In this document: positions 1 through 59,078 of the stretch, piece by piece
Numbering within the stretch: the first letter of the stretch is position 1
How the letters are laid out: each line of letters begins with the position of its first letter
Assembly: GCA_002269645.1 (NCBI GenBank)
Contig: NIVC01002682.1
Location: forward strand, 1-59,078
DNA: 59,078 nt
Origin: Macrostomum lignano
Lineage: Eukaryota
Direction of reading: 5' to 3'
Program-made: the position numbers and the translations under genes
The notes under the pieces: generated by a model
The model's input: the letters and a program-made list of their open reading frames with translations, nothing else
Told to the model about the DNA's origin: nothing
Databases searched by the model: none

Positions 1-3000
1 TTTTGTATCAGAGCTGATGGTGGTCCAGTCTGTCAAGAAGTTAATCTGGGAGTCCAGCAACTCGAGCTGAATCAAGCGCGACTGCTAGTAAGAAAAGTTG
101 ATAGGTTGATTTTTGAAGACACGACTGTAGAATGTCCGTATGGCGTTGTGCTTGAGGATTCCTTAGTGGGCAGCTACGATGAAGTAAGCACTGCTGAAGT
201 GAGAATCTGTGCTCAGGAACTCATAGCAAAATCAGCCTTCGAAATGCGAAACATCAATGCTGTAGAGATTCATGCAGATAAATCCGCTTCACTTGGACCT
301 GGAAGCAAAATCACATTCTGCAAGACCTTACGCCTGATAAGTAAATTTATTGATAATCTGGCTTCTATACAAGACACGGGATCCATTGCTTGCGAAGCGG
401 AAAATGCTCTTGTCGTTGGAAGCTTAAAATGTCGTTCGAAGCTCTCCATCTCAGCATCAAAGCTTATTTACAACCAAAGTCAGCTGAGTGCAGAAGATGT
501 CATACTTAACGGAAAAGTGCTAATGCACTTGTGTAAACGCGACGATGGCGATGATGCAAGCAAATTCACACCAGCAAACGTTCAGGCCAAAAATTCGCTA
601 AAAATGAAAAGCTGTGCCCTCATCACGATATTTTCAAAGCTGTGTAGCCCAACGATATCCACCAGAAGCATATTGCACTTTGGCTTTGCCGAACAAATTT
701 GCACAGATATCGAATCGGGGTCTGACGAGCTGAAGGCTTCAATCAAAGATTTAGAAAAGGTACTGCAGCCAGATTCAAGCAATCAGATGTGTGACGCACT
801 GAAAATCATGGTGCTAGACGCTGCACAGGCTTTCAGAGAAAATCATAATCGGTGTGCCCAGGTTGTTTCGGCTGCATCTAAAATGGTACTTCAGACGGTG
901 ACAGAGACTTCTGGTCTGCAGAGAAATTCCTCAGTTGCTAGTCTGCTTGCAGGCTTTACTGCTTCCATCAAGGAAGGGTTTTCTGAAACAGAAGAAGACT
1001 TATCGGATTACTGGAAGAAGCTTTACAAGTGCGATTGGACGCCGCTGAAATCAAACGGACTGTTCGAACGAAGTCGGTGGTTGTGCCTGATCGGACCTAC
1101 TCGAATTGAGGCCCAGAAAGTCATGTATGATTGTGAAAGCTGGCGGTCTGATGGCTCCATGGCGGTGAAGGATGGAGCCCTCATCAAATCCGTCTGTGCC
1201 CAGCTTTGGTCCGATCAGCCAACAACATGGCTTGTGTGCACTGGGGATGTGCACATTTTTGCGGAGAAACTCTTGAAGACTCGAAGCTTGACATCTGAAG
1301 AAGCCTCTGTAACTCTAAGAAGTGCTCAAATTGAAGCGTACGGAATCTGGTCAGCACGGAATTTGCTGATGGCCGCGGAGGAAAGCCTCGGCATTGACGA
1401 GATCCTTGGTGAGACGGAGGTTTGGATCACCGCTAAGAATGCTCGAGTGGGCAATTTAGCATCTGAGAGACTTTGTTTACTGTCTGAATCAGCGAGTATC
1501 GTGAATAGTACAAGCACAGAGATTTTGGAGGCAATTATTTCCAATGAACTCGATGCAAAGCTTGTATTTGCGCCTAAAACCTATCTAATAGCATCTGATA
1601 GCTTTGTCAGCATTAAGCTAGATTCATCGAAGTTAGAAAACTGCACAATATTGAGCGACTCCTGCCAGATTCTAAAGTGCTCGTTTACTAACCTAAATTG
1701 CAACGTCACTGATGAGTTGCTGGTAAGAACATCGCACGTGTTTGAAAAGTTCTTGGCAAAAACTAAGCGACACTTTAGCATCGGTGAGTTTTGTTTCCTT
1801 AAAGACTTGCACTGTACCGCAGAAGAGAAAATCAGCATTCAGCAGGTAGAAGCACAGCACCTGACTGTTTCGTGCTCCGACCTTCAAATTGACGACTTAT
1901 TAGCTGCTGCACTTAAAATTGTCAAAGCTGAAAATATTACAATAACTGACTCGAGCGTCACCGATTTAGAAGTTCGCTCTAGTAACATGACGAAGATTGC
2001 AGGTAGCTCAACAAAGACCTGTCTAGGAACAGCAACCTGCACGAGCAATAACTTCGAAATTGCAAATGTTTATGTCACTGAAACTTTGGTGTTATGCAGC
2101 TTCAAAGCAAAAGTAAGTGAAACTATGCTCTCCAAACTTTGGTTCATATGCCCTAAAGAAGGAGAATTATCCATTGAGCAATCGATGAGTGACGAATTCG
2201 TCGCTTTCTGCTCAGATTTGACGTCAAAACAAAACAAATTCACTAGACTGGCATTCCAGGGAAAGCAGTTAAAATTTTTCGAGACAGAGACAGAGAAAAT
2301 GCATGTAGATGCTTACAGTGGTTTTCTTCTGTCCAAATCTAGCGTCTTTGGCGACCTCGTAGCCTGGTCAGAAACTGCGCACGCGTTTGCCAGCTTACTG
2401 GGCTCGATGAAACTTCGTGGCTGTTCAGTGGGAGCTACAGTAAGAATGTGTGAAGTCCAGAAGGACATTGAAATCTCCTGCCGAATGCTGAGAATGTCCG
2501 ACTCAAGCGGCAAGTCCCTGAAGATCTTGTCAAGAGGAAACACAATCTTAGAGAGGCTGATGATTGATGAAGGCTGTGATGTTGCCAGTTTGGGTCATGT
2601 TACTGTGAGCGATTGTCAGCTGGACCATTTCAAACTACTGGCTGATTCGTCTGTGAATGTCGAAAGGCTCATTACAAATAAGAGCACAGTCGTCATCGCC
2701 AAGGGTCATACAACACTGAAACAACTCCTAGTCGGAAGTCTCCATGTGGATATAGGAAATTCTTATCTCAACATTCATGATCTCAACTCGGTAGGTCTGA
2801 GTTGGCTGAACTCGGGTAGACTGTGCATTTCCGACTGTCAATCTCAGTCGGATATGAAACTGACTGTCTCGATAGCAGCTCGAGTTGCGCAATGTTTTTC
2901 ACGCACTCTAGAAGTCACGGGTACGACAAATGGAATCGTGGGAGTCCGGCTGCTCGCAGTAAAATCGGAAGAGATAAACATTACTGATGCACTTTTCGCC

Positions 3001-6000
3001 TCAGTATCGACAACAGAAATCGTTAACAGTGTCGTCTTCAAAAGAATTTCGGGTGATGTACGAATCAAGTCAAACTGCAGTCTGCACAATCTGACAGTAC
3101 AAAGTAACGGCATTCTGGCAATCAGTGACTCAGAAATTGGTCAGGTAACAGCCGTGTGCAGGCGTTGCTGCATTACAAGCACTTTTGGACTGCAGACAAG
3201 TCTCTTCATTCACGCCAAAGAAACCATGGCCGCACCAGCAGTGCTGTTGAATCTCGTATCGAGAATCGACTCTGTCGAACTCGCTGGCAAGAACATCGCC
3301 TTGACGGAATGCGTCTTCAAAAACGGTACCATTCAAGCGGATGCTCAGTTCACAATGACTGGCTGCAACATTCGGGATACAGCCTGCATCCAGAGCGCCG
3401 AAGTCCGCGTTGCAGACACTGATGCTACCAGAATTCAAGTCAGCGCCTCAAACATTTGCGAGATCAAAAGTTTGCGATATGCAGAGGTCCAACTTAAGAC
3501 AAAAAAACTCCAACTTCAAGGCTGTTGTGTTCAAAAGGTTGAAGCGAAAGTTGAAACTACTGCGCAGGTGACCGCGTGTGAATTCATTGAAAGCCTTCTA
3601 CTAAAAGCAGATGTTACAATGGTTTGTGGTGTTTTGGTGCAGGATCGAATGCAGGTACAGACAAGGGTGCTTGATCTAGACGGTAGAAATTCCAAACAAG
3701 AAAGCGAAGGATTCACAAAAGAATTGCTTGTGATGTCTGGCCCTGAAACATGCGCTGAAGGAACAGCTGTGAACATAAAAAACATCAGGACAATGCAGCT
3801 TCAAGTGAATTCGAGACCCAAGACGGTTGTGTTGAGTCACGTGACGATTGAGAATACAGCTCTTTTGACCGGTAATGATATAAAACTAGAAAATGTTGAG
3901 ACTTCGATGCTGATTTTGAGCGCTGAGCCGACACAATGTAAGATAAGCTCAGGATTTATTGATTCGCTAAAGGGCTCAGTGGAAAATATGTCAATTTTGA
4001 CTTCATCACTAAAGCACACGGAACTGTCATGCGACTCTTTTGTCTTAGCTGGTGAAACAGACATTCAGCAAGAGCTTGTATTGAAAGTGAACAAGCTGGA
4101 AATTAAAACTGCCAAAGTTGGATCAGCCTGGATTTGCCCCAAAGGATCCAAAGCTTCGGCCACTGCAACGATTGAAGGATTTTCAACAGAGTTGACTTTT
4201 AAAATCGACGAATTCAACAAAATTTCAATTAGCGAGTGCTGTGGATTCAAAGGAGAAGTGACGTTGAAATGTCACACATTTGACGCAATGAAACTTTGCA
4301 GGTTCGATCAAAATGTGAGCATCGACTGTGAGCGCTGTGAAATGGAAAACCCGGAGTTCTCTGCATCCCTAACACTGCGCAGTCATGATGGTTTTATCCA
4401 CGGGGCCAGAGTGAGCAACAGGTGCAGTCTGTTTGTGTCCGGATCACTGAGTCTATCGGACTGCCAACTTAACGGTGCAGTGAAGTCATTTGGCAAGCAG
4501 GGGTTGCTCAAATTAGAGAATTCCAAATGCAGAAGCTTCCACCTAGAGGGCAGCGAAGTGGAAATAAATGGTGCAGACACGAGTGAAAGATCTTGGATCA
4601 GTGCTGCCAGCAAAGTGCATATTCGCAAGTGCCTGATTAGCGATGAAGTGGCAGTATCAGCAAGAGTTGTCAGTATTGATGGAGAGATCTCATTTATTAA
4701 GTCACTTCGTATTGACTGCGCTAGCGAGCTGCACATCGGGAGCCTAAAAGTGGATTCCAGCCTGCAGGTCACTTCATCGGGCAGAATTCGGGTGAACAGT
4801 GGAATCACCGCAGCTTCTTTTCTTATTCGCTCAGAATCAGAACTGCCAGATTTTGGAGCTGCAAAAGACTGCCAGTTTGACGAACTTCAAATTGACTGCC
4901 CAAGTTTTGACAAGGAGAATTTGGTCCGATTCATCAATGCAAAAACTTTCGAGTGTGTCAGGAATGTATTGAAAATAAAAACTAGAAAGCCAATCAAACT
5001 TTCTGGCAATGAGTTCCGAGAAAGGGAACTTGCTCTGAAATTCGGCATAACACTTGCCGCTCCGTCCATCAGCTTCAGAAATATTTGCGTTGCGTCCTTA
5101 AAGCAGATCTGCCTCATAGCCGAGTCAGGTGGAATCGATCTGCAGGAATATACAATACAAGCTAAGCAGATCACACTGGATGAGAAAACACAGGGTATGC
5201 GAAACAATGGCAGATATACTGAGCACCTTGGCTTCGAAGGTTCCATCACAACAAAGGCTACATCTCCGTTTGCAAGCATTTCCAGTGCTTACACACGTCA
5301 CAACGAAGCTTTCAGTTTGTCTTCTCCGACTCAAATGAATCCTAAGACTACTCAAGCTTCACTAGCTAAAGAACTTGAAGAGCGCCTCCTCACTCCTTGG
5401 GAGTTGAACGCATTGACTAATGTTGAGGAGAGAATCAGCAATGATCCTAGATTCTCAGAAACAGCTGTCGAATTCCATGAGACACCGGAGCCGATCAGTT
5501 CACTGACAGAGGCAGCCAAAAGCCCCACTGAGGCACCACAGCCGATCAGTTCACTGACAGAGGCAGCCAAAAGCCCCACTGAGGCACCACAGCCGTTCAG
5601 TTCACTGACAGAGGCAGCCAAAAGCCTCACTGAGGCACCGGAGCCTTCAAGTTCAATCGACTTCAGCTCAGACGCAGCCACTGCCTGTAAGTTTCTGCCT
5701 GTAAGCGCAAAAGAATCAGATCAAGAATGGTGGCAATTCGATTCCGAGTGTCGCTCAATCAAAGCGGAAATTCAGGCCAAACTGGAAGCAGTGCCAAGCC
5801 AGATCAACTGCGACTTTGAAGTTCCAGACTATAAAAATACCGAACAACAGCTAAAACTGCTGGTGGATAAGGCCACGACGGATTTCAATAGAGAGTTCGA
5901 GGCACCTCAAAGAACTTTGGATGGACACCAGAGCTGGCGAGACTTCGATAATTCCTGCTCAGTGTGCACTCGGAGTGATCCAGAAGACTTCCATGAAGCC

Positions 6001-6333
6001 AGAAAAGCTATGCAGTCCTGCATCACTGATTGTAGAGACATTCTACCAGTGAGCATTCGCGAGAAATTGCCGGACCAACTGCCTCAAGAGCCGGAGAGCT
6101 ACATCAACCGAGTCCATCCTCTGATTCGCGTCTCCCAGTTTCGGGTGACTATCGGGCCCTCCCGTGTGACCGAAATCGACGGTAAAATCGAGCTGGCCAA
6201 TTTCTGCAGCGCCGGTACGACACCGCGACCCGCCTTTCTTCGGCCTGTGGACCGGCAGCCGGAATATAAGGCGAAGGAGTTCAACATCAGAGTGCCCGAC
6301 TACTACAGCCACCACTATTGGGATCTCAAGTAG
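1..6333 (+). CDS. Giant intronless uncharacterised protein (>2100 aa, 5'-truncated by the window); predicted beta-solenoid/beta-helix with Pro/Ser/Thr linker and C-terminal domain
   Basis: Frame +1 is open from base 1 (TTT TGT ATC...) to TAG at 6331-6333. The track start at 106 is a TTG, so the true start lies upstream of the window. Long runs of alternating hydrophobic/polar short strands rich in S, C, I, L, V, N. ORF is certain; the fold is inferred. Confidence 0.75.
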   Translation, partial: FCIRADGGPVCQEVNLGVQQLELNQARLLVRKVDRLIFEDTTVECPYGVVLEDSLVGSYDEVSTAEVRICAQELIAKSAFEMRNINAVEIHADKSASLGPGSKITFCKTLRLISKFIDNLASIQDTGSIACEAENALVVGSLKCRSKLSISASKLIYNQSQLSAEDVILNGKVLMHLCKRDDGDDASKFTPANVQAKNSLKMKSCALITIFSKLCSPTISTRSILHFGFAEQICTDIESGSDELKASIKDLEKVLQPDSSNQMCDALKIMVLDAAQAFRENHNRCAQVVSAASKMVLQTVTETSGLQRNSSVASLLAGFTASIKEGFSETEEDLSDYWKKLYKCDWTPLKSNGLFERSRWLCLIGPTRIEAQKVMYDCESWRSDGSMAVKDGALIKSVCAQLWSDQPTTWLVCTGDVHIFAEKLLKTRSLTSEEASVTLRSAQIEAYGIWSARNLLMAAEESLGIDEILGETEVWITAKNARVGNLASERLCLLSESASIVNSTSTEILEAIISNELDAKLVFAPKTYLIASDSFVSIKLDSSKLENCTILSDSCQILKCSFTNLNCNVTDELLVRTSHVFEKFLAKTKRHFSIGEFCFLKDLHCTAEEKISIQQVEAQHLTVSCSDLQIDDLLAAALKIVKAENITITDSSVTDLEVRSSNMTKIAGSSTKTCLGTATCTSNNFEIANVYVTETLVLCSFKAKVSETMLSKLWFICPKEGELSIEQSMSDEFVAFCSDLTSKQNKFTRLAFQGKQLKFFETETEKMHVDAYSGFLLSKSSVFGDLVAWSETAHAFASLLGSMKLRGCSVGATVRMCEVQKDIEISCRMLRMSDSSGKSLKILSRGNTILERLMIDEGCDVASLGHVTVSDCQLDHFKLLADSSVNVERLITNKSTVVIAKGHTTLKQLLVGSLHVDIGNSYLNIHDLNSVGLSWLNSGRLCISDCQSQSDMKLTVSIAARVAQCFSRTLEVTGTTNGIVGVRLLAVKSEEINITDALFASVSTTEIVNSVVFKRISGDVRIKSNCSLHNLTVQSNGILAISDSEIGQVTAVCRRCCITSTFGLQTSLFIHAKETMAAPAVLLNLVSRIDSVELAGKNIALTECVFKNGTIQADAQFTMTGCNIRDTACIQSAEVRVADTDATRIQVSASNICEIKSLRYAEVQLKTKKLQLQGCCVQKVEAKVETTAQVTACEFIESLLLKADVTMVCGVLVQDRMQVQTRVLDLDGRNSKQESEGFTKELLVMSGPETCAEGTAVNIKNIRTMQLQVNSRPKTVVLSHVTIENTALLTGNDIKLENVETSMLILSAEPTQCKISSGFIDSLKGSVENMSILTSSLKHTELSCDSFVLAGETDIQQELVLKVNKLEIKTAKVGSAWICPKGSKASATATIEGFSTELTFKIDEFNKISISECCGFKGEVTLKCHTFDAMKLCRFDQNVSIDCERCEMENPEFSASLTLRSHDGFIHGARVSNRCSLFVSGSLSLSDCQLNGAVKSFGKQGLLKLENSKCRSFHLEGSEVEINGADTSERSWISAASKVHIRKCLISDEVAVSARVVSIDGEISFIKSLRIDCASELHIGSLKVDSSLQVTSSGRIRVNSGITAASFLIRSESELPDFGAAKDCQFDELQIDCPSFDKENLVRFINAKTFECVRNVLKIKTRKPIKLSGNEFRERELALKFGITLAAPSISFRNICVASLKQICLIAESGGIDLQEYTIQAKQITLDEKTQGMRNNGRYTEHLGFEGSITTKATSPFASISSAYTRHNEAFSLSSPTQMNPKTTQASLAKELEERLLTPWELNALTNVEERISNDPRFSETAVEFHETPEPISSLTEAAKSPTEAPQPISSLTEAAKSPTEAPQPFSSLTEAAKSLTEAPEPSSSIDFSSDAATACKFLPVSAKESDQEWWQFDSECRSIKAEIQAKLEAVPSQINCDFEVPDYKNTEQQLKLLVDKATTDFNREFEAPQRTLDGHQSWRDFDNSCSVCTRSDPEDFHEARKAMQSCITDCRDILPVSIREKLPDQLPQEPESYINRVHPLIRVSQFRVTIGPSRVTEIDGKIELANFCSAGTTPRPAFLRPVDRQPEYKAKEFNIRVPDYYSHHYWDLK
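5482..5645 (+). repeat. Coding tandem repeat, 51 bp x3 (17-aa PISSLTEAAKSPTEAPQ)
   Basis: Units start at 5491, 5542 and 5593, nearly identical. Confidence 0.95.
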
Positions 6334-8111
6334 CTTAGTTGATCTTAATTCAATTATACATATAGCCATGGCAGAGAACCACCGTAATCCTGCCACTGAG
6401 AATTAGCTATACAGTGTAGCTGGTAACTTATCAATGAAGCCCGATCGTTTTCAATAATGTTTTCCCTAACCGTTGTTATATGATTTCAATCCCTGTACAC
6501 GAAAAGCATACACGTACTTGAAAATTCAAATGCGATAGCAAACTTTTTTTTATTTCCCCTAATTTTATATGTAGGCTTTTTAGGAGTAGATTTTTAAAGT
6601 ATCTCATTTATTAAACTCAATTGTTTGCCTGAATTAAACATTTACGCAAAACTTTAATCGCTTAAACGACCCATTCACACCACCATCAGATTCAGCCAAT
6701 TTTATTGAGGGGGTTTCACATCTCCGAAAACCATCCATCATGCAGCTTCTCTCACAACTCTGTATCTCCATCAACGGTTAGGGTTAGGGTAGGGTTAAGA
6801 AATTGTCGGAACTATGAGAGGTGCTGTCGACATTTTTAGAGGTATGAATTGCACCCCTTTTAGTGATTACACAACTTGCACCTCACTTTTCATTGGGTTT
6901 CTATTTTTTGCGTCGGTTTCATGGCTTACTATTCGATGGCGGTGTGTGAACGAGCCTTCAAACTTGCTTGTTTGTCACTACTATTTCGCTTTAATTTTAT
7001 TAATATGTTGGAGCCTTAAATTATGCAAGCTGAGCTAATTATAGTACTTGAACCCAAGCAGCCTTAAGCAAATACAAAATGATCGGCACTTTTAAACTTT
7101 TTTTAGGATGTACACGTGGCCCAATATCACTTAGGTGTATTATTTGCCTGTCAACTTTTTCAAGACAAATACACTGTACGCTCGTACGACCTATGCACTG
7201 CATTAGCTACTAGCTATGAATATAGCGTACTTTGAGCTAACTAGTGAATTCGCACTTTCATTAGGAAATTGAAATAAAAATAGCTAGTAATTACACTGCT
7301 AAACCGCTCTTACATGTAAAATACGAGCGTACAATATGGCTACCGCTTGTACATGTAAATGGTTTAACTCTTGCACTAACGTTACTGCATAGTATAAAAC
7401 GGTATCTAATGTTTTTTTTTTATTTCTGATAAAAATGCTTCAATGTGTCGAGTGCTACTCGGCGTACAGTAGTACAGCTGAATGATAGAAGTAAGCAATG
7501 TTGATATCTTAGCCGTTTGACGGCTTTACGAGCAACAACGGAGCTTTGTCTGGGTTAGTGCAAGCATTCTGTTAGGGATGCGTTTGGTTTAAGGCTCGAA
7601 TTTCTGGATTCAAAAATACATTGTTGCGTTAATTTGCGTTTATTTTCAAAATAGTGCAGTTCTACTAATATAGCCTTGGACTAATATACATGTAGTTCAG
7701 CAATGGTAACAATTGATTCAGAAAAAAATTAGTTGGCTCAAAGGCTTCATTAATGGTGGCGTGAGCGAACCGAAAGGGACTTATAGTTATATAATTGTAC
7801 GCATATTTGTACTGGATTGCATCTGGAATGAAGATTTGCTCGCTCATCAAAATAGTTACTCTGGTTAAATACAGTTGCAGTAAAAACCACTTTTCAGAAA
7901 GTTGACGATGCTACACTGAAAGCGTGCGCTTTGTGCTCAAATTTATTTCAAATTGATTAATTGTGGAAGCTTGTGAAACTAAACAATGCTGGTTTTCGCA
8001 CTGTCCAGAGACTATTAATGCATTGTAACACTACATTAAGTTGAGAGCAAGACTAATATTATGTAACATTGTAGAGGGAAAAGCAACAATTCTGCGGATC
8101 CCAAGCAGAAT

Positions 8112-8188
8112 AAAAAAGCAGATAGAATCAGCTCATCGAGCACTGCAAAATTGTCAGTTTTACTCGATGGCGTCATGAGCGCTTTTTT
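8112..8188 (-). promoter_or_regulatory. Type II SECIS element in the SELENOF 3' UTR
   Basis: Minus strand reads AAAAAAGC-GCUC-AUGAC-GCCAUCGAGU-AAA-ACUG(ACAAUUUUG)CAGU-GCUCGAUGAGC-UGAU-UCUAUCU-GCUUUUUU: helix I, AUGA/UGA kink-turn core, 10-bp helix II with one bulge, unpaired AAA and an apical mini-stem. It lies about 430-510 nt downstream of the stop. Confidence 0.88.
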
Positions 8189-8621
8189 AGCTGTGGGATA
8201 ACGACAACACATAGCTATATTTAATATCAAACCGACTAATTGCAGACCATTAAAGTTCATTTTGCTACGCATTTTCGCTTTTGCTACAGAGCAAAGCGAA
8301 TCGACAAAAGCAATTTGATCATTCACTTGCCCCTTCCCCAGCTTCATTTTTAATAATAAAGTAGTATGATATTTTGGTAACGCAGGTATCCCTTAGACTC
8401 GAAGCATCAAATGTAAACCGATTGTCTGTTGAAACTAGTTAAGACCATGAAATGCTTTTTTAAGTCAGTTCAGCTAACTGCTATCAATGCAGTTATCAAT
8501 TTTTATGCATAATTTAGCCCATTATTGCTATAATTTCATTTTATCAATTGCAATGTTTTACTTAGCACCCCATGGCCTTGTTATAGTAACCAACTCAAGG
8601 AACTGAACTCTACACCAGTCG

Positions 8622-8797
8622 CTACCGGAGGAACTCCTCCAGAGTGTCAGTGTCCCATCGATCGATGCCGAACTCCTCACCGGTGCCAGCAGACCTGGCA
8701 GCCTCGTCCTGCATCAGCCGGATGACCGGCTCAGCGCCCCGCTTGTACTTGATGCTCAAGCCCGGGAACTGAGACGGTCGGTTCGACTTAATGAATG
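8622..8797 (-). CDS. SELENOF: SELENOF last coding exon
   Basis: ttgcag| then (A)FIKSNRPSQFPGLSIKYKRGAEPVIRL...WDTDTLEEFLR*, a Sep15/SelM thioredoxin-like C-terminus. Confidence 0.9.
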
Positions 8798-11700
8798 CTG
8801 CAATATCCAGTTTTGCCAGAATTGGCTAACTTTGAGTTTCAGCTTGTGCGGTGACTGTGTTAACTTTAAATTTATTTTGGTTTTATTATCTATCACTTTA
8901 AAAGCTACAGCTTGAGTCAGTCAGACTACTCTGTGTTAAAACTGTATCCAAAGACGTTTATTTTATTGAATTTTAACGACGACATCGTTTTACACGCAGG
9001 TACAATCCGATATGAATTGTTCTTCTTTACGTAACTTCCAAATTTCAAGCTCGCTGTGTTTAAATTATTACAAAATTAAAATGATTTCATAGTGAAAGTA
9101 TTAAATCACATTCATTTTAAATTGGCTGTTAAAATTGGAAAAATATGCTTCGAAATTACGATATATAACTGCTGAAAACTCAAAGATTTCCGTCAACAAG
9201 TGTCGCGCGTACTACGTTCATACAAATAATAAAACCAAAACCAACTAGTTAAATAGAACAGTCAGACTTGACACCCTTTCTACTACTTGCGAAACAGTAG
9301 GATACTTGGACATACACGTACAACTATTTCTAAGTCTATGAACTTAAAAAATTGCCTATACCTTAAACCTCGATACTATTAGTATAGTAAATGAAAAACG
9401 AAAATTTAGCATTAACTTTAATAACTTACCCTCAATCTGTGGATACCTGCCCAGTTTTCATCCGCATATCTCCAGCTCAGCAAATTGGTAGCGCTAAAAC
9501 GAAATTAAAAGAGAAAATAATGACGATGATTTTGTTGCTAAGCCTATCCTCATCTACATGTGCCTAAATGAGTTGGCATTGATGAACTATGGCAAAAATG
9601 ATTAAGACCTCAAGCAATTCGCAACAATTTTAAGACATTTTGAATAGCTTTTCAGGTACTTAATAACTGTTAATAGTAAAAGGGCACATGTATTGTTTGG
9701 GATTTTTATGAATGTGCAAATCTGCACTTTTCATATCGACTTTATTAATATTTAATAGATATTGTTAGCTAAATGAGTCGCATGCACAGCTAAAACTGAT
9801 CGAATCAGATTGGGGTGAATTGGTATTTTAGGGTGAAGAATTTATCAAAAAAGTCAACGTGAATCAAGAAGGTCATAAAGGTAGAATATTTGCTGATAAT
9901 ATTGAATATCTGCATACTGGAATGTAACAGCTAATAGGATCACGGAATGTGGGGCAGTACACAGGGACAGAGAAAAACTTTTCATATACAATTAAATGGA
10001 AACGTACAAGAGCATTAAATAGCATAGCTCGTAGAATAATCAAAATGTAACCAGACAGCCCGGACTAAAAAGGTGCTGTCATACAAGTACAGGTAGCCAG
10101 GGAGTTGCAAAAACACATGGAGCGCAGGAATGTGCAGTCAACAGGCCTTCGTATAGAGAGCTTCACCTATTGTGGAATGTCTATAGTGGCATTTGAAATT
10201 TTGTTGCTTATAAAAAACACATTTGAAGCAATATTTATTAAATCTGTAAATTTAAATATGGAATCATTATATGCCGAACTAAATTACTCAGTAGTAAGCG
10301 CCAGTTAATAATAAGCACATTGATTTTTTATCATAGAACAAGCTACGATAAATATTATGAAAAACGTGGTGTATATAGTAGGGGACTAAATCACAATGCA
10401 GGCACAGCCAAGCAGATTTGGGTTGTCTTTAGAAAAAATACATAGCGAGAGAGGTTTACAATTATTGGACTGATTGTGTTTTCAATAACCGAGTTACAAT
10501 AAATGGCTCAGTTCTACAAAAAGATGGATGCATACTAGAGATACTAAAGGATAAATGTCCTCTCAACAACTAAAACTAGCTTATGCATGGCAAATGGAAA
10601 GTTAACAATATAATTTTGTCAAGTTGGTATACTACTCCAAAAAAGTTGTTTGTTGAAGTGGTGGTGAATAAGTCGAATGTGAATCATTTAGAAGTTTTTC
10701 ATATTTTTAATGATAGCTATTAGATACACGTCAATAAATCTAACATCGATACGCTTTGTTTAACACAATATTTTAGTCATTTAATACTTTACACTTAGCT
10801 GATATGCTAGCTCTCTTCTGGAGTACTTTGAGCACACTGAAACTGTGCCTTCTCTTGACGCCAAATTCGACTCAACAATTAGTAAAAAAAATTCTTTAAC
10901 AGTCAAGTCAGTTAGTAAAGCTTGGCATATTTTAAAAGACAAGAAAAAAAGTCACGTACGAGCGTAGAAAAGACGAATCGAGAAAGCGGAGAAACAGAGA
11001 GATGGGAAGTCTTTAAAGAGCGAACGAATGCAGCAGATTTGGACCAATCGATCATTCAGGCGGCGGCACCGGCTGCTCCTGCGGTGGCGGCGGATCCGGA
11101 CCGTCCCAGACTTTGACGCCGCCGCGCCACACCCATTTGCCCTGACGCTTCTTACTATCTGGAACGTGAATCCGAGCTCGACCAGTCTTAACAGTCATGC
11201 CGCTGGCTGTCTCGTCAATGGACAGAATTGGCGCCTGTGGCTGAGGCGGAGGTGCAGGCATCATATTAGGAATGAGGTTGATAGGTAGAGTAGCCTGTGG
11301 CGGATGCGCGGGTCGCCTGAGCGCTACCTCGCCGCCGTCGCCTAGATCGTCTCGCGGCAGAGACGCGTCCCGTGGCAAATTGAGCGATTGGAATGGCAGC
11401 GGCTGTGATTGAGGCGGCTGCTGCTCAAATTGTTGCTCGTACATTTGCTGCTGTGCGATTGCTACACTCCAGTGAGCATTGTTAACAAAAATGGCCCGAA
11501 GAGTTCTGCGCTGATAAAAGAGCAGATAAGCATCCGAAGAGCTAACGGCGGTCATGTCGGACAGAGCTTCAACTTGGCCGTCGTTGAATCGCCACCACTG
11601 ATGATCAGATTGACTCAACGTGAAGGCGGTGTAGTGGCCAGATTGTAGGCTGCCAGTGTGGTTGACTACGCCAACCAGATCGTAGGTGAAATCGGCCGGC

Positions 11701-14700
11701 GTTGCTGACTGCGGAGGCCGGCCAGTGGCAGACAGCGAGTAAGGATTCAGGCGGCCAAGATTCTCCTCGTCAAGGTATTCGGACATGTCCAGCGATTCGA
11801 TAGGAAACTGGACAAAAGCGGCAACCTTGGATTTGCGCGTTCCAGTCTGTTGAAATCGTTTCAATTGAATGACCAACAGATCAGGGCAAGTCCACATTCG
11901 TGAGATTTGTTCAGCTTGTTGAACTCGGCGACAGTTCGGACACATCCAAGAAGCTGGGAAGCCCTGCATGTACTCGGCCAGACAGTCCTGCAAGCTGACT
12001 GGCCTGTCCTGCTGTTGAGCAGCCGCCGTCCGAAGACTAGCGTCGGCTTCAATTTCGTCAACATAAGCGGCAGCGTAGCGCTGTCGTTCGGCGACACCCC
12101 AGACAACTGTGAGCTTAAGATGGCGCGGCCCGCCATCGGCCAGATTAAAGTTCAATGCCCGGTCTACAGCGGGACCAACAAGTGGCGGCGAACGCTGATT
12201 CTGCTGGAGTACAGAGGACTGCGGTGGTCCGTCAACAAGGCGCAGTTCAACATAGACATCGCGCTTATTAGCAATTCGAGCCAGATCTCCAGCCGTTTCC
12301 AGTTCGGTTAGTAGGGCCTCTTTAAGCTCGGCATGAGTACAGTGTACCTGGAGCTGAGTGTGCAACGGGCCAGTAAAGCGGCGCAGCTCTCCGCTGCGGG
12401 TGCGCTCGCAGTGAACGGACACAATGCGAATGTAGCTAAGGTCCTCCTCCTGTGGTCGGATGCCAGCACCGATACCGTCTGGTCGATAGACGGGCTCTGA
12501 GTCGCTCGAGTCAGAATCGTCGCCATCGTCCATGACTGGATTGGGCAGTTGAATAGCATAAAGGCTGCCTGCCTCGCCCAGCTCGCACAACAGCGCCGTA
12601 GAATCCGTGTCGCGGAATGTGCGCCGGAATCCGTTTGGTCCAATTTCGCACAGGAGCAGATGACGGGGATCCTCCAGCTGCCAGCGAGTTGTCAAACTGC
12701 GTCGAAGCTCGCGCACAGAACCATCGGCAGCAACTTCCAAGCCGAATCGAGTCTGACGGCCGCGCTCGTCAGCTAGTACGATAGTGAGCGCTCGAGTTGT
12801 GCCTACAGGAATTGGCAGAGACAAGCAAGTGATAGGCTCCGTAGTGCTGGTGGTGAAGCTGCATCCGGGACACTGCAGTCGATTGCGTTGGTAACCATAG
12901 AACAGCTGGTAGACAACAGAACGGTTTCTTTGAGCGTGGTCCTCGGCAAAAGTGGCACTATCGGCATTGACAGAAGGCGGTAGCGGCGGCTTCTGTTTAG
13001 CCTTTGGCTGTCTTTTATAGCCATTGAGCTCATCGTGGAGATGATCCAGCAGCAGCAGCATGAACTCATGGGCGTCCTGTTGGTCCCGCAGAGCCAGCTC
13101 CGGTCGAGTCTGAGCAACAATCTGACGAAGATTGTCAGACAGCTGAGGCTGATAGTTGCCAAACCAAAGCGACTTTAGTAGCTGAGCGAATGCCTCGGTG
13201 AGTTCAGTGCGATATTCGTGTGGGATGGGGCGGCCTTTTTTATCAACTGTGCCCGCGTATAGATCTTGTAGGTATAGCTCGGACGCAAAGTAGTGCGCCA
13301 GCGGGTCAACATGGCAGATGCATTGCACTATGGCATTCATGTAGCAACTATTGCCGTGATTAACAATGCCAACTAAGCCAGGACCGAAATTATCAACTGG
13401 TACGCCGCTGGCGGATGGCTGGCTGGCAGCGGTGGTGCCATGGAACGATTGAGACTGTTGCGGCTTGCTTGCTGCAGCAGCGACTGCGGCATTAGGCAAC
13501 ATAGGAGCAGCGGATGTGATAACAGCTCCGCTGGTGGATCCGCTCGCATTTACCGGTTGATTGCGAGGCAGAGACGAAGATCGCAACTGCTGCTGCGCCT
13601 GCGCTGGTTGGGGAGGCGGTAGAGTAGGCGAAGGCAGTTGCTTCGGTGACGGCACCGTTTGAGGCAAAGCGTGAGAGCGCGGTTTCGGCTGTGGTGGCGC
13701 AGGCTGTGTCTGTGGCGGCGGCGCCTGGGAAGGCATTGGCTGCACTGATGGGGGCGGCTCTTTCTGCAGTGGTGGCTGCGCTACTGGCGGCGGTGGCACT
13801 GGCGGCGATGAAGCAGAGTCCCTATCCTTGTCTTTTTTCTTTTTCTTCTCTCTGTCTTTGTCTTTCTCTTTCTTATCTTTTTTCTTGCCCTTAGGCTTCG
13901 GTGCAACTGGCGGCGGCTGCTGAGGCGGTTGAATATTGTCGCCATCCAAATCGGACGAGTTTCTATTTGCTGATTCGGCAGGTGGCTGGCGCATCACTAT
14001 ATTAGGATTTCGCTTAGCCGAGCTGGCCTCCTTGCCCGGGGCTGCTCCGGGTCGAACAGCTGTATGAGCAGATTGGTCTTGCATGCGATCAGCCATGATT
14101 TGCAGGCCAGATAGCGAGTTGCAGTCGAGAGAAAAGAAAGAAGATTGACTGAATCAGATGCTTGAATACAGAAGCAGATTATTGAATACCACGGTTGGCA
14201 CAGTGATCAAACGAAAAAATACACAGCACTGCAAACCAAATAGACTGATTCACAAAAGCAGAGTTGTAGAAGAAGAGTTCAGCAGTCAGCAAATTACCAG
14301 TTTGGTACTGTCTAGACTGTCGCCTTTGCAGCACTGCTGGCAGGCTTGATCCAACTGAGACAGGCCGAACTGCTTCAATTGCGAGCAGGAGGAGCACTCT
14401 AGAGCACTAGTGAAGCCAGACTGCTTGCATTGGTCAGGGCTCAGAATCTGGCACTGGAGCACTGCCTGTGAGGTGAAAAAAATGGGTAAAAAAATTGTTT
14501 TGAACTTCATTTAGTATTTTTTTGCCAACTTAATGAAGATAATAATTAGCAATGGAATCAAACTACGTTTTATTTCAGATTGAAAATGCTATAGTGCCAA
14601 CTTAAACCTTGGCTTTGTAAATATAAATTTCATTAACTTACTCACTCTTTAAGGTTTGATATTTTCTATCAAATCTTTTTCTAAAAAATCAATCTAATAA

Positions 14701-17038
14701 ATTTTAATGCAAGCATAAAATAGTACTATTTATTTATTATATATGTTGCTAATTTTTTTGTAAGTCAGCACATTTATACTTGCTTCCCCCTCATTCCTTT
14801 TTGTATCTACCTAGCTTAATTTACACCTTATCTTTAATTGCGCAATGCCTCAACCCCAATATGTATATCATTCTATTATTCCACCTATCTTTTATCTATC
14901 TCTCTGATTAAAACCTAATATTTAATACCTTGCTTCTTTTATCTGTGGAACAAAAAATTATTAATTAACAAACTTGTTTATTTACACTTTTTTCATAAGC
15001 TCCTTAGCTCTTACAGGGGTCACTTTAAAAAATTACAAACAAATTTCAATTGAGCATTTTTATCACTTATTGTATTCAAAGTTATAACAATATATAATGA
15101 ATATAGTAAGTCTACTAGTCTTTGATTATTATATAAACAAAATTATTTTATTGATAACTTTTAATTATGAGTTTAAACATGCACTTAGATAACCAAATAG
15201 AATATTATTAGGCTAGGAGTATGGATTGACTTATAAATACTATTCAAATATAGTAATTGGATACCACTTTATAGTTTACTATTTTGTCCTTTTTAATATA
15301 AAAATTATTTTTACTTTTATATTATTAGGTTTTACTTGGAAAAAATATTGAATTTTCAAATAATATTCAATGGAATAAAATACAATTTTACAAATATTAA
15401 CTTTACAATATTTACCAAATGACTAAAATGGAATATAAGTTAAATTCATATGAAAGATTCATAGCCAAAGATCTAAAAGATAAATAGGCCTCCTTAATAT
15501 TATTTTTTGTCATAGGTTATTTAATAAAATTAAAACTTTACCTTTATTACTTATTAAGTCTATTTTTATATTTAACTAAATATTATAAAAATGTTTATTA
15601 GAGGGCTTAAAAATTCTTAGTATACTAGGTCTAAGACTATTAGTGAAAAACAATAATATGCTAGACTTTCTAACATTAGCAAAAATGCATTCTTTGGTTT
15701 GGACTATAGTATTTACTAATCTAATTTGTATAAATTAGGAAAAAAATAAGGTTAAATAGGACTATGGCCATAAGATATATTTATTTTAAAAGCATAAATT
15801 ATAAATTATAGTAAAATTATAATAAAATTTACTTTAATTTCAAAAACAAAAAGCTATAAAACATCTCAATAAACTATACCCAAAAACTGTTAATTTATCA
15901 TTAAACTTTGTATATCATTAGAACTTTAGAACCAAAAATGAATTTTTGCAACATTTTTCAAAGCAAAAGGCAGTACAAATCATTTGAATTGTCTTGTCCG
16001 AACTAGGCCTAGATAAAATAAGATAGGCCTAATCATTACACTAACATGATATGCATAGTACCCAATTTGTTAGACTACAATGATGATTTTACAGCAACAA
16101 TTTATAGTTTAAAAAGCCTGATTCCGACTGCCTACACTATGTGTTATTTTTATTTTAAATAATCTATATTTGCTTGTATTGTGGTTGTGGGTTGCGACAA
16201 AATAAGACAAAGCAGAATGTGAGCTTCTGAGAAAACGTAATACGTTTTCTACACTTAAGAACAACGAAAGCGAAAGTCATAGCCAAACAGATAGATGCAA
16301 TAAGTTCCTTACCGCTTGCAAAACGATTAAAAACGCAGTAACAACCTGCATAAGGCGGAAATGAGAAAGCTCAATACAAAATTACTCGGAAACACAATAA
16401 TTTTAAAAGTGTGCCCTTATATTGAGAAGTAACCAAACTGATAAATAGTATTATAACAAGTACCTTAAAAATAAAAGCAGACAAATTAACACAACAATCC
16501 AATAGTTTAAAATAATCTTAAAATTAAACGTGCGCATTTTTGAAGACGTTTTTTAAAATTTGTTAGCTAAATTTAATTTAAAGAATTTTTGCAGTAGAAA
16601 TTTACAAGAAATAGTTAATTTATTTTCTCAACTGATTTAGACTAGGCCTAAGAAAGCCGCTTGAGGTTTAATACAACGAAATTAAAATAGAAGTGGCCGT
16701 TTAAAATTGTAAATCTACCATATTACCTTATTTTTGACGCTATATTCAGAACACCGAATTTCAAAAAGTATACGCCTAAACTAAACGGAAAACGTGAAAA
16801 TCGACATCTGCTGATCTGATGCTGATGCTGATAATGAACTTTTTTGTGTAGGCCTGCATAAATTCGTTTAGTACTTATGGACGTGTGGTGGTGTGTCTTT
16901 ATAATAACGCGTATGAATTCATTAGAGGCTACTTTATTTATGTATTTAACTCTACAGTATTTCTGTAAAAAATAGAGGCCTAGCACCAACCAACCAAGCA
17001 GTGGCAAGCACTGCAGCAGCAGCAGTATCTAGATGCAT
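8622..17038 (-). CDS. SELENOF: Selenoprotein F (Sep15); exons 17038-16991 (tentative), 14465-14298, 9493-9430, 8797-8622
   Basis: Spliced translation ...QCKQSGFTSALECSSCSQLKQFGLSQLDQACQQCC...STKL|RYQFAELEICGUKLGRYPQIE|AFIKSNRPSQFPGLSIKYKRGAEPVIRL...IDRWDTDTLEEFLR* matches the Sep15 Cys-rich N-terminus and CGU redox motif. GT/AG boundaries with consistent phases (0, 0, 1); UGA at 9460-9458; SECIS present. Confidence 0.92.
9430..9493 (-). CDS. SELENOF: SELENOF exon 3 containing the Sec codon (CGU motif)
   Basis: ttttag|CGC TAC CAA TTT GCT GAG CTG GAG ATA TGC GGA TGA AAA CTG GGC AGG TAT CCA CAG ATT GAG G|gtaagt. Confidence 0.92.
11052..14096 (-). CDS. USP31: Ubiquitin-specific protease, USP31/USP43-like (1014 aa, single exon)
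   Basis: Cys box GIVNHGNSCYMNAIVQC, QQDAHEFMLLLLDHLHDELN, CPGC...EPITCLSLPIP, insertion with LCEIGPNGFRRTFRDTD (USP31/43-type), His box YDLVGVVNHTGSLQSGHYTAF, WWRFND, AYLLFY. Confidence 0.9.
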   Translation of the reverse strand: MADRMQDQSAHTAVRPGAAPGKEASSAKRNPNIVMRQPPAESANRNSSDLDGDNIQPPQQPPPVAPKPKGKKKDKKEKDKDREKKKKKDKDRDSASSPPVPPPPVAQPPLQKEPPPSVQPMPSQAPPPQTQPAPPQPKPRSHALPQTVPSPKQLPSPTLPPPQPAQAQQQLRSSSLPRNQPVNASGSTSGAVITSAAPMLPNAAVAAAASKPQQSQSFHGTTAASQPSASGVPVDNFGPGLVGIVNHGNSCYMNAIVQCICHVDPLAHYFASELYLQDLYAGTVDKKGRPIPHEYRTELTEAFAQLLKSLWFGNYQPQLSDNLRQIVAQTRPELALRDQQDAHEFMLLLLDHLHDELNGYKRQPKAKQKPPLPPSVNADSATFAEDHAQRNRSVVYQLFYGYQRNRLQCPGCSFTTSTTEPITCLSLPIPVGTTRALTIVLADERGRQTRFGLEVAADGSVRELRRSLTTRWQLEDPRHLLLCEIGPNGFRRTFRDTDSTALLCELGEAGSLYAIQLPNPVMDDGDDSDSSDSEPVYRPDGIGAGIRPQEEDLSYIRIVSVHCERTRSGELRRFTGPLHTQLQVHCTHAELKEALLTELETAGDLARIANKRDVYVELRLVDGPPQSSVLQQNQRSPPLVGPAVDRALNFNLADGGPRHLKLTVVWGVAERQRYAAAYVDEIEADASLRTAAAQQQDRPVSLQDCLAEYMQGFPASWMCPNCRRVQQAEQISRMWTCPDLLVIQLKRFQQTGTRKSKVAAFVQFPIESLDMSEYLDEENLGRLNPYSLSATGRPPQSATPADFTYDLVGVVNHTGSLQSGHYTAFTLSQSDHQWWRFNDGQVEALSDMTAVSSSDAYLLFYQRRTLRAIFVNNAHWSVAIAQQQMYEQQFEQQPPQSQPLPFQSLNLPRDASLPRDDLGDGGEVALRRPAHPPQATLPINLIPNMMPAPPPQPQAPILSIDETASGMTVKTGRARIHVPDSKKRQGKWVWRGGVKVWDGPDPPPPQEQPVPPPE
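14298..14465 (-). CDS. SELENOF: SELENOF exon 2 (Cys-rich UGGT-binding domain)
   Basis: CxxxGF-x-LxCSSC...C..CC pattern; pyrimidine tract plus CAG acceptor; GTAATT donor. Confidence 0.9.
16991..17038 (-). CDS. SELENOF: Candidate SELENOF exon 1 (signal peptide MHLDTAAAAVLATAWL)
   Basis: ATG, 16 hydrophobic codons and a GTTGGT donor in phase 0, matching the cacctcacag acceptor at 14466. The joined sequence gives a plausible signal peptide. Confidence 0.5.
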
Positions 17039-18641: not shown

Positions 18642-19712
18642 CAAGGATGACTTAAGTAGAATGATGGGAAACCTTGTTTCTTAGAAAATTTTAGAAGGCA
18701 GGTTTTCCCTAGTCTTCAGAGTCAGGTGCGAATTTGCGCCTGGTGCAAAAGGGATATCAACTTAAGCACCAAAATTGAGCCCGAAGTTCAGCTCCAGCCC
18801 AAACCGACTGCAATCGATAACTTGTCGGCCCAGATGACTAGAATCGCCGAGACATCCCATCCGGCTCCCTTCCTTGGGGTCCCAGGGGATAAAGGGGATA
18901 AAATGGGGATCTCATGTCAACTTAAGGCTCTGGAATGGAGCCCGAAGTTCAGCTCCGGACCAAACCGACTGCAATCGATAACTTGTCGGCCCAGACGACT
19001 AGAATCGCCGAGACATCCCATCTGGCTCCCTTCCTTGGGGTCCCAGGGGATAAAGTGGATAAAATAGGGATCTCGTGTCAACTTAAGGCTCTGGAATGGA
19101 GCCCAAAGTTCAGCTCCGGCCCAAACCAACTGCAATCGATAACTTGTCGGCCCAGACGACTAGAATCGCCGAGACATCCCATCCGGCTCCCTTCCTTGGG
19201 GTCCCAGGGGATAAAGGGGATAAAATGGGGATCTCATGTCAACTTAAGGCTCTGGAATGGAGCCCGAAGTTCAGCTCCAGCCCAAACCGACTGCAATCAA
19301 TAACTTGTCGGCCCAGACGACTAGAATCGCCGAGACATCCCATCCGGCTCCCTTCCTTGGGGTCCCAGGGGATAAAGGGGATAAAATGGGGATCTCATGT
19401 CAACTTAAGGCTCTGGAATGGAGCCCGAAGTTCAGCTCCGGCCCAAACCGACTGCAATCGATAACTTGAATTGCAGCCAAATTTGTGTTGATGTTTGCGA
19501 ATTCAATTATTTTGTTGGAAGTACATATATTTGATATACATCTTGGCAGTAGCAAATGCAGGGGAGAGGGCTTTGCTGGCTGGAGCCAAGGATGACTAAA
19601 GTAACGTACATATAGGACTCAAGACTCAACTTTTGTGGAAAATTTGTTGGAGGCTTTCAATGAAATTCTCACCAATTCTGAGTTTTGCATCCTTCTACTT
19701 AAGTAGTCCTTG
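18642..19712. mobile_element. Non-autonomous TIR element (about 1.07 kb) carrying an internal 161-bp satellite
   Basis: Left tcaaggatgacttaagtagaatgatg vs reverse complement of right end tcaaggactacttaagtagaaggatg (23/26 identical). Termini CAAGG...CCTTG flanked by ACT on both sides (candidate 3-bp TSD). Confidence 0.6.
18777..19468. repeat. 161-bp tandem repeat, about 4.3 copies
   Basis: gagccc(g/a)aagttcagctcc recurs at 18777, 18938, 19099, 19260 and 19421 with very few differences. Confidence 0.95.
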
Positions 19713-39000: not shown

Positions 39001-39112
39001 GCGCTGCGGGGAAGTCGACCTGAATCTTGTCAGGATCAAGCAGAGTCATCCGGCGTCCATCGCGATGGCTCGGACGCAGACTAAGTGAACTAAAAGAATC
39101 CTTAGATGTCAT
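36048..39112 (-). CDS. BTB-BACK-Kelch protein (divergent KLHL-like); exons 39112-37666 and 36907-36048
   Basis: BTB motifs LADICIEF..THESVLQSY and PSVMRIGLNFAYTGSVELTPEDLANV; BACK-like segment; Kelch repeats (LMAFGSS|DNFISV, AVATGG, LFICGG, LWAFGG...W). G|GTGAGA donor at 37665 and ttttattccag acceptor at 36908 share phase 1. ATG at 39112 follows an acceptor at 39124. Confidence 0.82.
37185..37420 (+). mobile_element. tRNA-derived SINE (copy 1), in the BTB-Kelch intron
   Basis: A-box-like cagctcagtgg (37189), B-box ggttcgattc (37233); body shared with 55325-55540. Confidence 0.65.
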
Positions 39113-39839
39113 GCGGCAATATGCTGTCGAGAGCTTGAAGTTAGAATTGGTAGAAATTTCTATTCTAACGGCACATAATCCTTTAAGTCTGCGTGGCTGG
39201 GAGCTATCAACATAGTTCCTGACTAAATGCATGCATGCTTATATAGGCTTGAATGCCGTTAACTACTGCGTGTGCTACTTGCATTCAAGAGTGCCTGCCT
39301 GTGATTCTGAGGCTCCCCAACTTTCCTGCACTAATCTTATAGAGTCGCAGAATGTTAGTGAGACTAAATTCAATGGAGCACTCCGGATGCAACTTTCCAT
39401 TATTGACGCTTAACTGAAAGCTTAATGATCAGGATTTAACAGTCGGGGCAAGTATGGATAGCTATTGTATAGTACATTCGTGTAGCATTGATGGAACTTT
39501 AGTGCATCTGAATTGCGCAAAACAGACAGTAAACAACATGCAGAGTAGAGTGACTTTGTTTATTTTGTGATCTTTTTGCGTTCAGTTTATGAAGCTAAAT
39601 AAATGTACTTCTACAACCGTAGAAGTATGTGCAAACGGTGTAATGCACTATAGCGAAAATTTCAAGTGTGCTTTTCCTATCTAGCTACTGAAAGTAGACA
39701 TTGCGTTGCTCACTCTTTCTATGAAATGAAAGTGTACATACATGTGTCTCTCTATGAACCGAAAGTATCCTAATTACCTAAATTACACTGAATTTCCTTC
39801 TCGAATGGGGCTTGCAGGTGTGGTCACGATGAAGTACAG

Positions 39840-40050
<211 letters not shown>

Positions 40051-58667: not shown

Positions 58668-58741
58668 AGACAGACAGACAGACAGACAGACAGACCTAGA
58701 CAGACAGACAGACAGACAGACACAGACAGACAGACACTAGA

Positions 58742-58802
<61 letters not shown>

Positions 58803-58816
58803 GGACAGACAGACAC

Positions 58817-58853
<37 letters not shown>

Positions 58854-58912
58854 ACAGTGACAGACAAGATAGACAGACGGACAGACAGACAGACAGACAG
58901 ACCAGACAGACA

Positions 58913-58983
<71 letters not shown>

Positions 58984-59008
58984 GCACAGACAGACAGACA
59001 GACAGACA

Positions 59009-59078
<70 letters not shown>
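58668..59078. repeat. (CAGA)n microsatellite, interrupted, runs off the right edge
   Basis: Direct inspection. Confidence 0.98.

Follow-up and report, generated by a model that had tools for sequence, protein, structure and literature searches.

The stretch of DNA analyzed here (the window) is the complete contig NIVC01002682.1, 59,078 bp in length, of the Macrostomum lignano assembly Mlig_3_7 (GCA_002269645.1), and its 5′ end carries a giant open reading frame (ORF) belonging to the gene labeled “hypothetical protein Mlig022560” in GenBank. Frame 1 of window positions 1–6333 (+) comprises 2,110 sense codons and ends with the stop codon TAG at 6331–6333 (+). Because the longest other ORF overlapping this region in any frame has only 141 amino acids (aa), the giant ORF is not a chance occurrence. 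It is open past the 5′ edge of the window, and a copy on the sister contig NIVC01000490.1 (locus L003) adds approximately 1,070 codons upstream. The intact gene on L003 consists of 3,180 open codons in one exon (nucleotides [nt] 4466–14005); counted from the first ATG, which is codon 42 (nt 4589), the protein has approximately 3,138 aa. Window nt 1 corresponds to L003 nt 7675, and the window covers the 3′ two-thirds of the gene (codons ~1070–3180), which is deposited as PAA55961.1, “hypothetical protein, partial”. An exhaustive HMMER scan combined with a protein cluster look-up located the GenBank copies: PAA55970.1 is Mlig022560.g1 on contig NIVC01002681.1 (locus L002), and PAA55961.1/PAA82174.1 is Mlig022560.g3, “partial”, a 1,318-aa product mapping to window 2326–6333 and to L003. 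A preliminary description of the window, made from its letters, had reported a frame of more than 2,100 codons open beyond the window edge in an animal genome. Both the frame and its continuation were confirmed, the upstream extension that it proposed led to the start on L003, and the contig is assigned to M. lignano, with eukaryotic or animal ORFs as neighbors.

No intron was found in the 9.5 kb of the L003 gene, in agreement with the intronless frame of the preliminary description. The annotated gene models contain a 51-nt gap that equals exactly one unit of a 17-aa repeat; a true intron was rejected because of this equality and because no placement gives GT-AG, and what was annotated as an “intron” probably arose when the repeat collapsed during transcript assembly. 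Such a large gene with only one exon is unusual in M. lignano, the genes of which have a mean of 4.9 introns (PMC5730564). The Mlig_3_7 annotation was made from RNA-seq data (StringTie/TACO, TBONE, and TransDecoder; PMC5730564), and the gene models of Mlig022560, which derive from this annotation, imply that it is transcribed. Mlig022560 is a genuine, transcribed M. lignano gene with a single exon, and window 1–6333 holds its 3′ part. By hydropathy, the start of the complete protein on L003 (MSMKMNECIRIAASRVSVADRSQKF) contains no hydrophobic core of the signal-peptide type, the best 9-residue Kyte–Doolittle mean in the first 40 aa being 1.4; the search for a signal peptide suggested earlier thus gave a negative result at this end. 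Over the full protein, no clear candidate for a transmembrane segment was seen (best 19-residue Kyte–Doolittle mean, 1.72). A polypyrimidine tract followed by a “cag” acceptor (L003 nt 4522/4523) precedes the first ATG by 66 nt and is in phase with the ORF; judging from its sequence, it could be a spliced-leader acceptor or a cis-splice acceptor.

The protein encoded in the window is rich in Ser (11.2%) and Leu (9.8%), contains 2.5% Pro, and is acidic (D+E 12.8% vs K+R 10.8%). Its Cys content, described earlier as high, is raised (3.7%, 79 of 2,110 residues, with four CC pairs in the protein) but not extreme. There are 17 N-x-S/T sequons, which are not enriched over the approximately 22 that we estimate by chance. 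The strand-type hydrophobic moment exceeded the helix-type moment in all 100-aa blocks except window residues 201–300 and 1801–1900, in agreement with the short, alternating strand-like character that had been noted. The helical-looking insert proposed at residues ~195–300 coincides with the first of these two blocks, the moment analysis being the sole support for it; together with residues 301–450, which have a lower hydrophobic content, it forms a non-beta insert at window 583–1350 (+, residues ~195–450). The second block lies in the repeat and linker region. This Pro/Ser/Thr/Glu-rich linker (5122–5715, +, residues ~1708–1905) has no predicted secondary structure and a predicted local distance difference test score (pLDDT) below 50, and within it lies a tandem repeat of 51 nt (17 aa) in 3.2 copies with 95% matches (5478–5639, +). 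Three 17-aa units are present in all three genomic copies of the gene, and two in the annotated proteins P0001 and P0003. Proline accounts for 0–0.7% of residues 451–1200 and for 9% in blocks covering residues 1801–2100. The C-terminal region of approximately 205 aa (5716–6330, +) has predicted helices, a terminal beta-hairpin, and a CxxC...CxxxC pattern; it found no relatives in an exhaustive scan, and its fold was not confidently predicted by AlphaFold2 (pLDDT <50). Both the linker with its 17-aa repeats and the compositionally separate C-terminal region correspond to parts recognized in the preliminary description.

In the beta-rich body, the autocorrelation of hydrophobicity had z-scores of −6.3 at lag 3, −5.7 at lag 4, −0.3 at lag 2, and 3.6 at lag 19; several local windows peaked at lag 19–20, and the hydrophobicity spectrum peaked at a period of approximately 6.15, one-third of ~18.5. 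This pattern suits short strands in three-sided coils of 18–19 residues better than long amphipathic strands. When AlphaFold2 was applied to window residues 1051–1700, the mean pLDDT was 54.8, with values of 70–90 at piece residues ~350–610 (window residues ~1400–1660), and a second model of residues 1401–2110 again contained a confident all-beta block (residues ~1485–1665), whereas neither the linker nor the C-terminal region reached a pLDDT of 50. The best-supported candidate solenoid segment, at window 4198–4995 (+, residues ~1400–1665), is all-beta with a pLDDT of 70–90 in two independent runs and has direct ~19-residue coils of the form hxh..S/G..hxhxG/N.hxh. The confident stretch can be written as direct rows of 18–19 residues (for example, RSWISAASKVHIRKCLISD / EVAVSARVVSIDGEISFIK / SLRIDCASELHIGSLKVDS / SLQVTSSGRIRVNSGITAA), with hydrophobic pairs and Gly/Asn/Ser turns in register across the rows, and strand runs assigned by DSSP span 17–25 residues, outlasting one 19-residue period. 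Direct rows with such long strand runs fit stacked parallel coils better than a hairpin meander. A profile hidden Markov model built from eight of the 19-residue coils matched only inside its own training region. In Foldseek searches against the PDB, the nine best matches of the first model were right-handed beta-helix secreted proteins (HxuA, IgA1 protease, EtpA, Hap, Hbp, and EspC; E-values 1–8, template modeling [TM] scores ~0.2), and the two best matches of the second were a phage tailspike and an ice-binding protein. On these models, the stretch of approximately 260 aa at window residues ~1400–1665 probably forms a beta-solenoid. The giant beta-solenoid-like protein of the preliminary description thus finds support in some 260 aa that are confidently predicted as all-beta with a direct 19-residue repeat, and a solenoid was not shown along all ~1,700 aa; likewise, the AlphaFold and Foldseek comparison that it recommended returned a confident segment with beta-helices as the top matches, none of them significant.

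No match above threshold for the giant protein was found in Pfam, NCBIfam, PHROGs, or the PDB sequences. The Bactofilin profile (PF04519) scored 10.6 and 11.8 bits, below its gathering cut-off of 27.9 (E-values 0.3–0.7), and the DUF4097 profile (PF13349, GIN-type adhesins) scored 7.4 bits, below its cut-off of 22.9 (E-value 3.5). Among Pfam matches with E-values up to 5, there was no Beta_helix, NosD, or PbH1 profile of the fibrocystin, CEMIP, or SHCBP1 type, and Rfam gave no match in the window. In an exhaustive phmmer scan of 1.84 billion protein cluster representatives, with the last 1,200 aa (window residues 911–2110) as the query, only the gene's own copy P0001 and one 278-aa low-complexity protein, P0002, were matched, the latter only within the 17-aa repeat. 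Scans of bacterial and archaeal genome contigs and of metagenome contigs yielded no relatives. Word-index homology searches with the window ORF, with the full-length N-terminal 604 aa, and with the helical insert plus a 71-aa control also found nothing, including no homologue of the non-beta insert; however, this search missed the control, which is identical to P0001/P0003, and its negatives therefore carry little weight. By “orphan” we mean that there is no relative among annotated proteomes, a set that seems to lack the other Macrostomum species, given that the protein cluster has two NCBI members only; it does not mean that relatives are absent from the genus. Within the annotated proteomes searched, these comparisons support a lineage-restricted protein outside known families, in line with both the unknown family and the lineage-specific alternative of the preliminary description.

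The gene is present in three near-identical copies (in the window, on L002, and on L003), each followed by the same USP gene, which fits the known recent polyploidy of M. lignano (PMC10733133). When the window ORF is aligned with that of L003, just two differences are seen: a G/T substitution at window 1623 and a single A at nt 59, where the window has AA and both L002 and L003 have AAA. Because the extra A puts the upstream part in window frame 2, the first 19 residues of the window frame (FCIRADGG...) are most likely out of frame; the contig-end stretch at window 1–59 (+) is probably read in the wrong frame, with window frame 2 continuing the ORF. On L002, four single-base insertions or deletions (indels) break the frame, two of them in A runs, and more indels cluster near the contig end; from its sequence, this pattern looks like long-read assembly error. 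The contigs NIVC01002681.1 and NIVC01002682.1 have consecutive accessions; their ends fall within one and the same ORF, oppositely oriented and separated by 192 nt, and in a comparison of the ends (window 1–59, L002 1–200, and L003 7483–7733), both contig ends were rich in small indels. Either these ends represent a real head-to-head duplication that truncates both copies, or they are an artefact of scaffolding or of a palindromic long read. The window matches its sister copies at 99.7% identity over the giant ORF and 4 kb downstream (window 1–10320), and this value falls sharply to 94.7% over the USP gene region (window 10390–15419, from the alignments with L002 and L003). This step suggests either recent homogenization of the giant gene by gene conversion or a mosaic assembly of homeologues.

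The Pfam-identifiable ORFs elsewhere on the contig encode a USP deubiquitinase, VPS28, a PP2A-regulatory-type EF-hand protein, a Kelch-like protein, a QRICH1-like protein, and a synaptotagmin-like double-C2 protein. Contamination was rejected, since the synaptotagmin-like, VPS28, and USP genes are on the same contig. The synaptotagmin-like ORF (window 49337–50632, +) is intronless, has 431 aa and two C2 domains, and shows a GC content at third codon positions (GC3) of 0.80, compared with 0.47–0.56 in the other contig ORFs. Two further ATG-started ORFs of 529 and 562 aa (28397–29986, +, and 37544–39232, −) have a GC content of 0.53–0.55 and no Pfam match, and the former abuts the PP2A-regulatory-like EF-hand ORF at 29935–30846 and may belong to the same gene. 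Immediately 3′ of the giant gene, at window ~6777–6800, there is a short TTAGGG-like run (ggttagggttagggtagggttaag) that looks like an interstitial telomere-like repeat. The contig also contains tandem arrays of 161 bp × 4.3 copies (96% matches; 18773–19468), 28/89 bp × 30 copies (33267–34152, with overlapping ORFs at 33645–34273), and 19 bp × 26 copies (56652–57147), a (CTGT)n array at 39840–40050, and an (AGAC)n array at 58668–59078 that reaches the 3′ end of the contig.

We read Mlig022560 as a fibrous structural protein restricted to its lineage, in which at least one segment, and probably several, would form a beta-solenoid, and we judge the chances of this reading being right to be about even. 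Under this reading, the body consists of long runs of short beta-strands, of which at least residues ~1400–1665 would stack as parallel coils of ~19 residues to form a rod. Two non-beta inserts interrupt these runs, after which come a flexible, acidic linker rich in Pro, Ser, Thr, and Glu that contains the three 17-aa repeats, and then the C-terminal domain of ~205 aa. The rod could serve as a scaffold or as a rigid spacer, with the specific contact made by the C-terminal domain at the end of its tether. An intracellular structural role is favored because the only exon seen has no signal-peptide-like N-terminus, and we lean towards a role in some flatworm-specific rigid structure. The solenoid geometry beyond residues ~1400–1665, the cellular location, and the function are features that we infer; we also infer a rod of approximately 50–60 nm, if ~2,400 residues form coils of 19–22 residues at 4.8 Å per coil. 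More speculatively, and with considerably less confidence, the protein may found a new metazoan family of mega beta-solenoids: an animal-born, probably cytoplasmic rod of ~3,100 aa with more than 100 irregular coils of 18–25 residues (~50–60 nm) that would form or reinforce a rigid structure specific to flatworms, for example the stylet, sperm bristles, or anchor-cell scaffolds, and use its C-terminal domain as an attachment module.

Several observations weigh against the fibrous, intracellular reading. AlphaFold2 was run on single sequences, without an alignment, and more than half of each model had a pLDDT below 50. Foldseek returned nothing significant from the PDB for either model (E-values of ~1 or worse, TM scores of ~0.2), and its matches in BFVD, with E-values down to 1e−5, were rejected as compositional (TM scores of 0.1–0.2, root-mean-square deviation >16 Å). 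Internal repeats at the residue level do not rise above shuffled controls: the best score in an all-versus-all BLASTP comparison of 150-aa tiles was 31 bits, against up to 28.9 bits in shuffles. A lag-similarity scan placed 12% of positions above the 95% null, in patches, with a preferred lag of 17–27; a solenoid extending over the whole body would have to be highly irregular. The search for homologues of the first ~1,900 aa of the complete protein was by word index only, with its weak negatives, and we found neither an expression site nor a phenotype for Mlig022560 in the M. lignano literature and supplements. The in-phase acceptor may also leave room for an upstream exon with a signal peptide.

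In a rival reading, the protein is secreted and has a structural or adhesive role outside the cell, such as in rhabdites, the eggshell, the stylet matrix, or glue, and its signal peptide would be encoded by an unannotated upstream exon. The acceptor-like site (tattctttcag) is in phase 0, with no in-frame stop between it and the first ATG; the Cys content and the CC pairs, the general tendency of beta-helix rods to occur in secreted proteins, and the giant, cysteine-rich adhesion proteins without homologues that M. lignano secretes (PMC6410801) point in the same direction. However, the acceptor equally suits spliced-leader trans-splicing, which affects 38.8% of M. lignano genes (PMC5730564), the 4.4 kb upstream on L003 contain no convincing coding ORF or exon-like ORF of at least 80 aa, sequons are not enriched over the chance estimate, and Pfam searches detected no lectin, vWD, EGF, or TSP domain such as the known adhesion proteins carry. 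We consider this alternative unlikely, although it retains some weight. Even less likely, in our judgment, is a beta body that is not a solenoid but a repeating beta-groove bridge of the VPS13/ATG2/BLTP-like type or a tandem array of highly diverged small beta domains. Most of the sequence was modeled without confidence, and a beta-rich, non-repetitive protein of ~3,100 aa with inserts, a separate C-terminal region, and no signal peptide has the outline of the bridge-like lipid-transfer proteins. On the other hand, no Chorein_N, VPS13, ATG2, or other Pfam match was found, the lag-2 periodicity that long groove strands should give is absent while lag 19 is positive, the 19-residue rows of the confident segment are direct rather than mirrored, and the top Foldseek PDB matches are parallel beta-helices, not grooves.

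It is similarly improbable that the window copy is a 5′-truncated, non-functional duplicate at a palindromic junction with NIVC01002681.1, leaving only the NIVC01000490.1 copy at work. The paired contig ends inside the ORF, the frame-changing indel at nt 59, and the four ORF indels on L002 would fit such a junction; yet, apart from nt 59, one base in 6.3 kb separates the window ORF from the intact L003 ORF, the indels (single-base, two in A runs, and several near contig ends) suit long-read assembly error, and the RNA-seq-based annotated model P0003 maps to the window copy. The least probable of the alternatives, which we give very little credence, is that a bacterial adhesin or toxin of the two-partner-secretion (TPS) or autotransporter type, or a viral fibre, was horizontally acquired and domesticated in the flatworm. 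In its favor are the ~19-residue coils, the passenger domains among the top Foldseek matches, the sub-threshold similarity to Bactofilin and DUF4097, and the lack of introns in a genome averaging 4.9 per gene. However, the Foldseek matches are not significant, and no bacterial, archaeal, or viral relative appeared in the 1.84-billion scan (last 1,200 aa), in PHROGs or NCBIfam, or among the scanned contigs of genomes and metagenomes. Pfam gave no match to the TPS secretion domain (PF05860) within the N-terminal 1,138 aa, with E-values up to 5; the motif NPN[LG] has 0 matches in 3,139 aa; neither Fil_haemagg-type repeats (Pfam, NCBIfam) nor a neighboring TpsB transporter (among the Pfam-identified neighbors) was found; and Pfam gave no match to a C-terminal beta-barrel translocator (PF03797) or a pertactin-like passenger profile. 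Furthermore, the gene has a GC content of 0.46 and a GC3 of 0.47, within the range of the neighboring host genes (GC3 0.47–0.80), and its three homeologous copies lie in a conserved host context, beside the same USP gene. The horizontal acquisition considered in the preliminary description was therefore not upheld, and its adhesin, toxin, or extracellular filament likewise lost ground, given the N-terminus without a signal-peptide-like stretch and the missing TPS domain and NPNL/NPNG motif.

GenBank already lists the gene, as a partial hypothetical protein. Its fold class is known, whereas its family is not, and its setting is uncommon, namely an animal protein of ~3,100 aa that apparently has no signal peptide. 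In the public annotation the gene is incomplete and frameshifted; NIVC01000490.1 supplies the whole 9.4-kb coding sequence. Bacterial surface proteins and phage fibres commonly contain long rods of parallel beta-helix, but in animals such rods are rare, and those that lack a signal peptide are even rarer. Should a solenoid of 3,100 residues without relatives indeed be encoded in this animal, it would be instructive as to the origin of very long orphan proteins and could be a candidate component of one of the hard, molecularly uncharacterized structures of macrostomids; if the gene is merely one more fast-evolving lineage-specific structural gene, its practical value would be smaller. M. lignano is amenable to RNA interference, in situ hybridization, and transgenesis, and the function is therefore directly testable.

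Compared with known systems, Mlig022560 resembles the TPS exoproteins and autotransporter passengers (FhaB/HxuA/EtpA and Hap/Hbp/EspC) in being very long and mostly beta, with one segment predicted to have direct ~19-residue coils, in having a putative rod followed by a distinct C-terminal part, and in its top, although non-significant, Foldseek PDB matches. In contrast to them, it has no sequence homology to this group, lacks the signal peptide, TPS domain, NPNL/NPNG motif, Fil_haemagg repeats, and barrel or partner transporter, and sits among ordinary flatworm genes. Bactofilin is a cytoplasmic beta-helix with approximately 18 residues per turn, and the hydrophobicity period of ~6.15 in Mlig022560, a third of a coil of ~18.5 residues, recalls both Bactofilin (PF04519) and the DUF4097 “toastrack”; however, the profile scores are far under the gathering thresholds and Mlig022560 is approximately 30 times longer. 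With the bridge-like lipid-transfer proteins it shares a length of ~3,000 aa and the general outline described above, but not the Chorein_N/VPS13/ATG2 match or the lag-2 signal, and its 19-residue rows are direct. A precedent within the species is provided by Mlig-ap1 (5,407 aa) and Mlig-ap2 (14,794 aa), the giant, cysteine-rich adhesion proteins of M. lignano, which, like Mlig022560, have no homologues in public databases (PMC6410801). These two proteins are secreted and contain Lys/Arg-rich regions, large repeats, and lectin, vWD, EGF, TIL, LDL, and TSP-1 domains (PMC6410801), whereas Mlig022560 has none of their domains, is acidic, is non-repetitive beyond its 3 × 17 aa, and shows no signal peptide; they nevertheless set a precedent for giant, cysteine-rich, homologue-free proteins in M. 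lignano.

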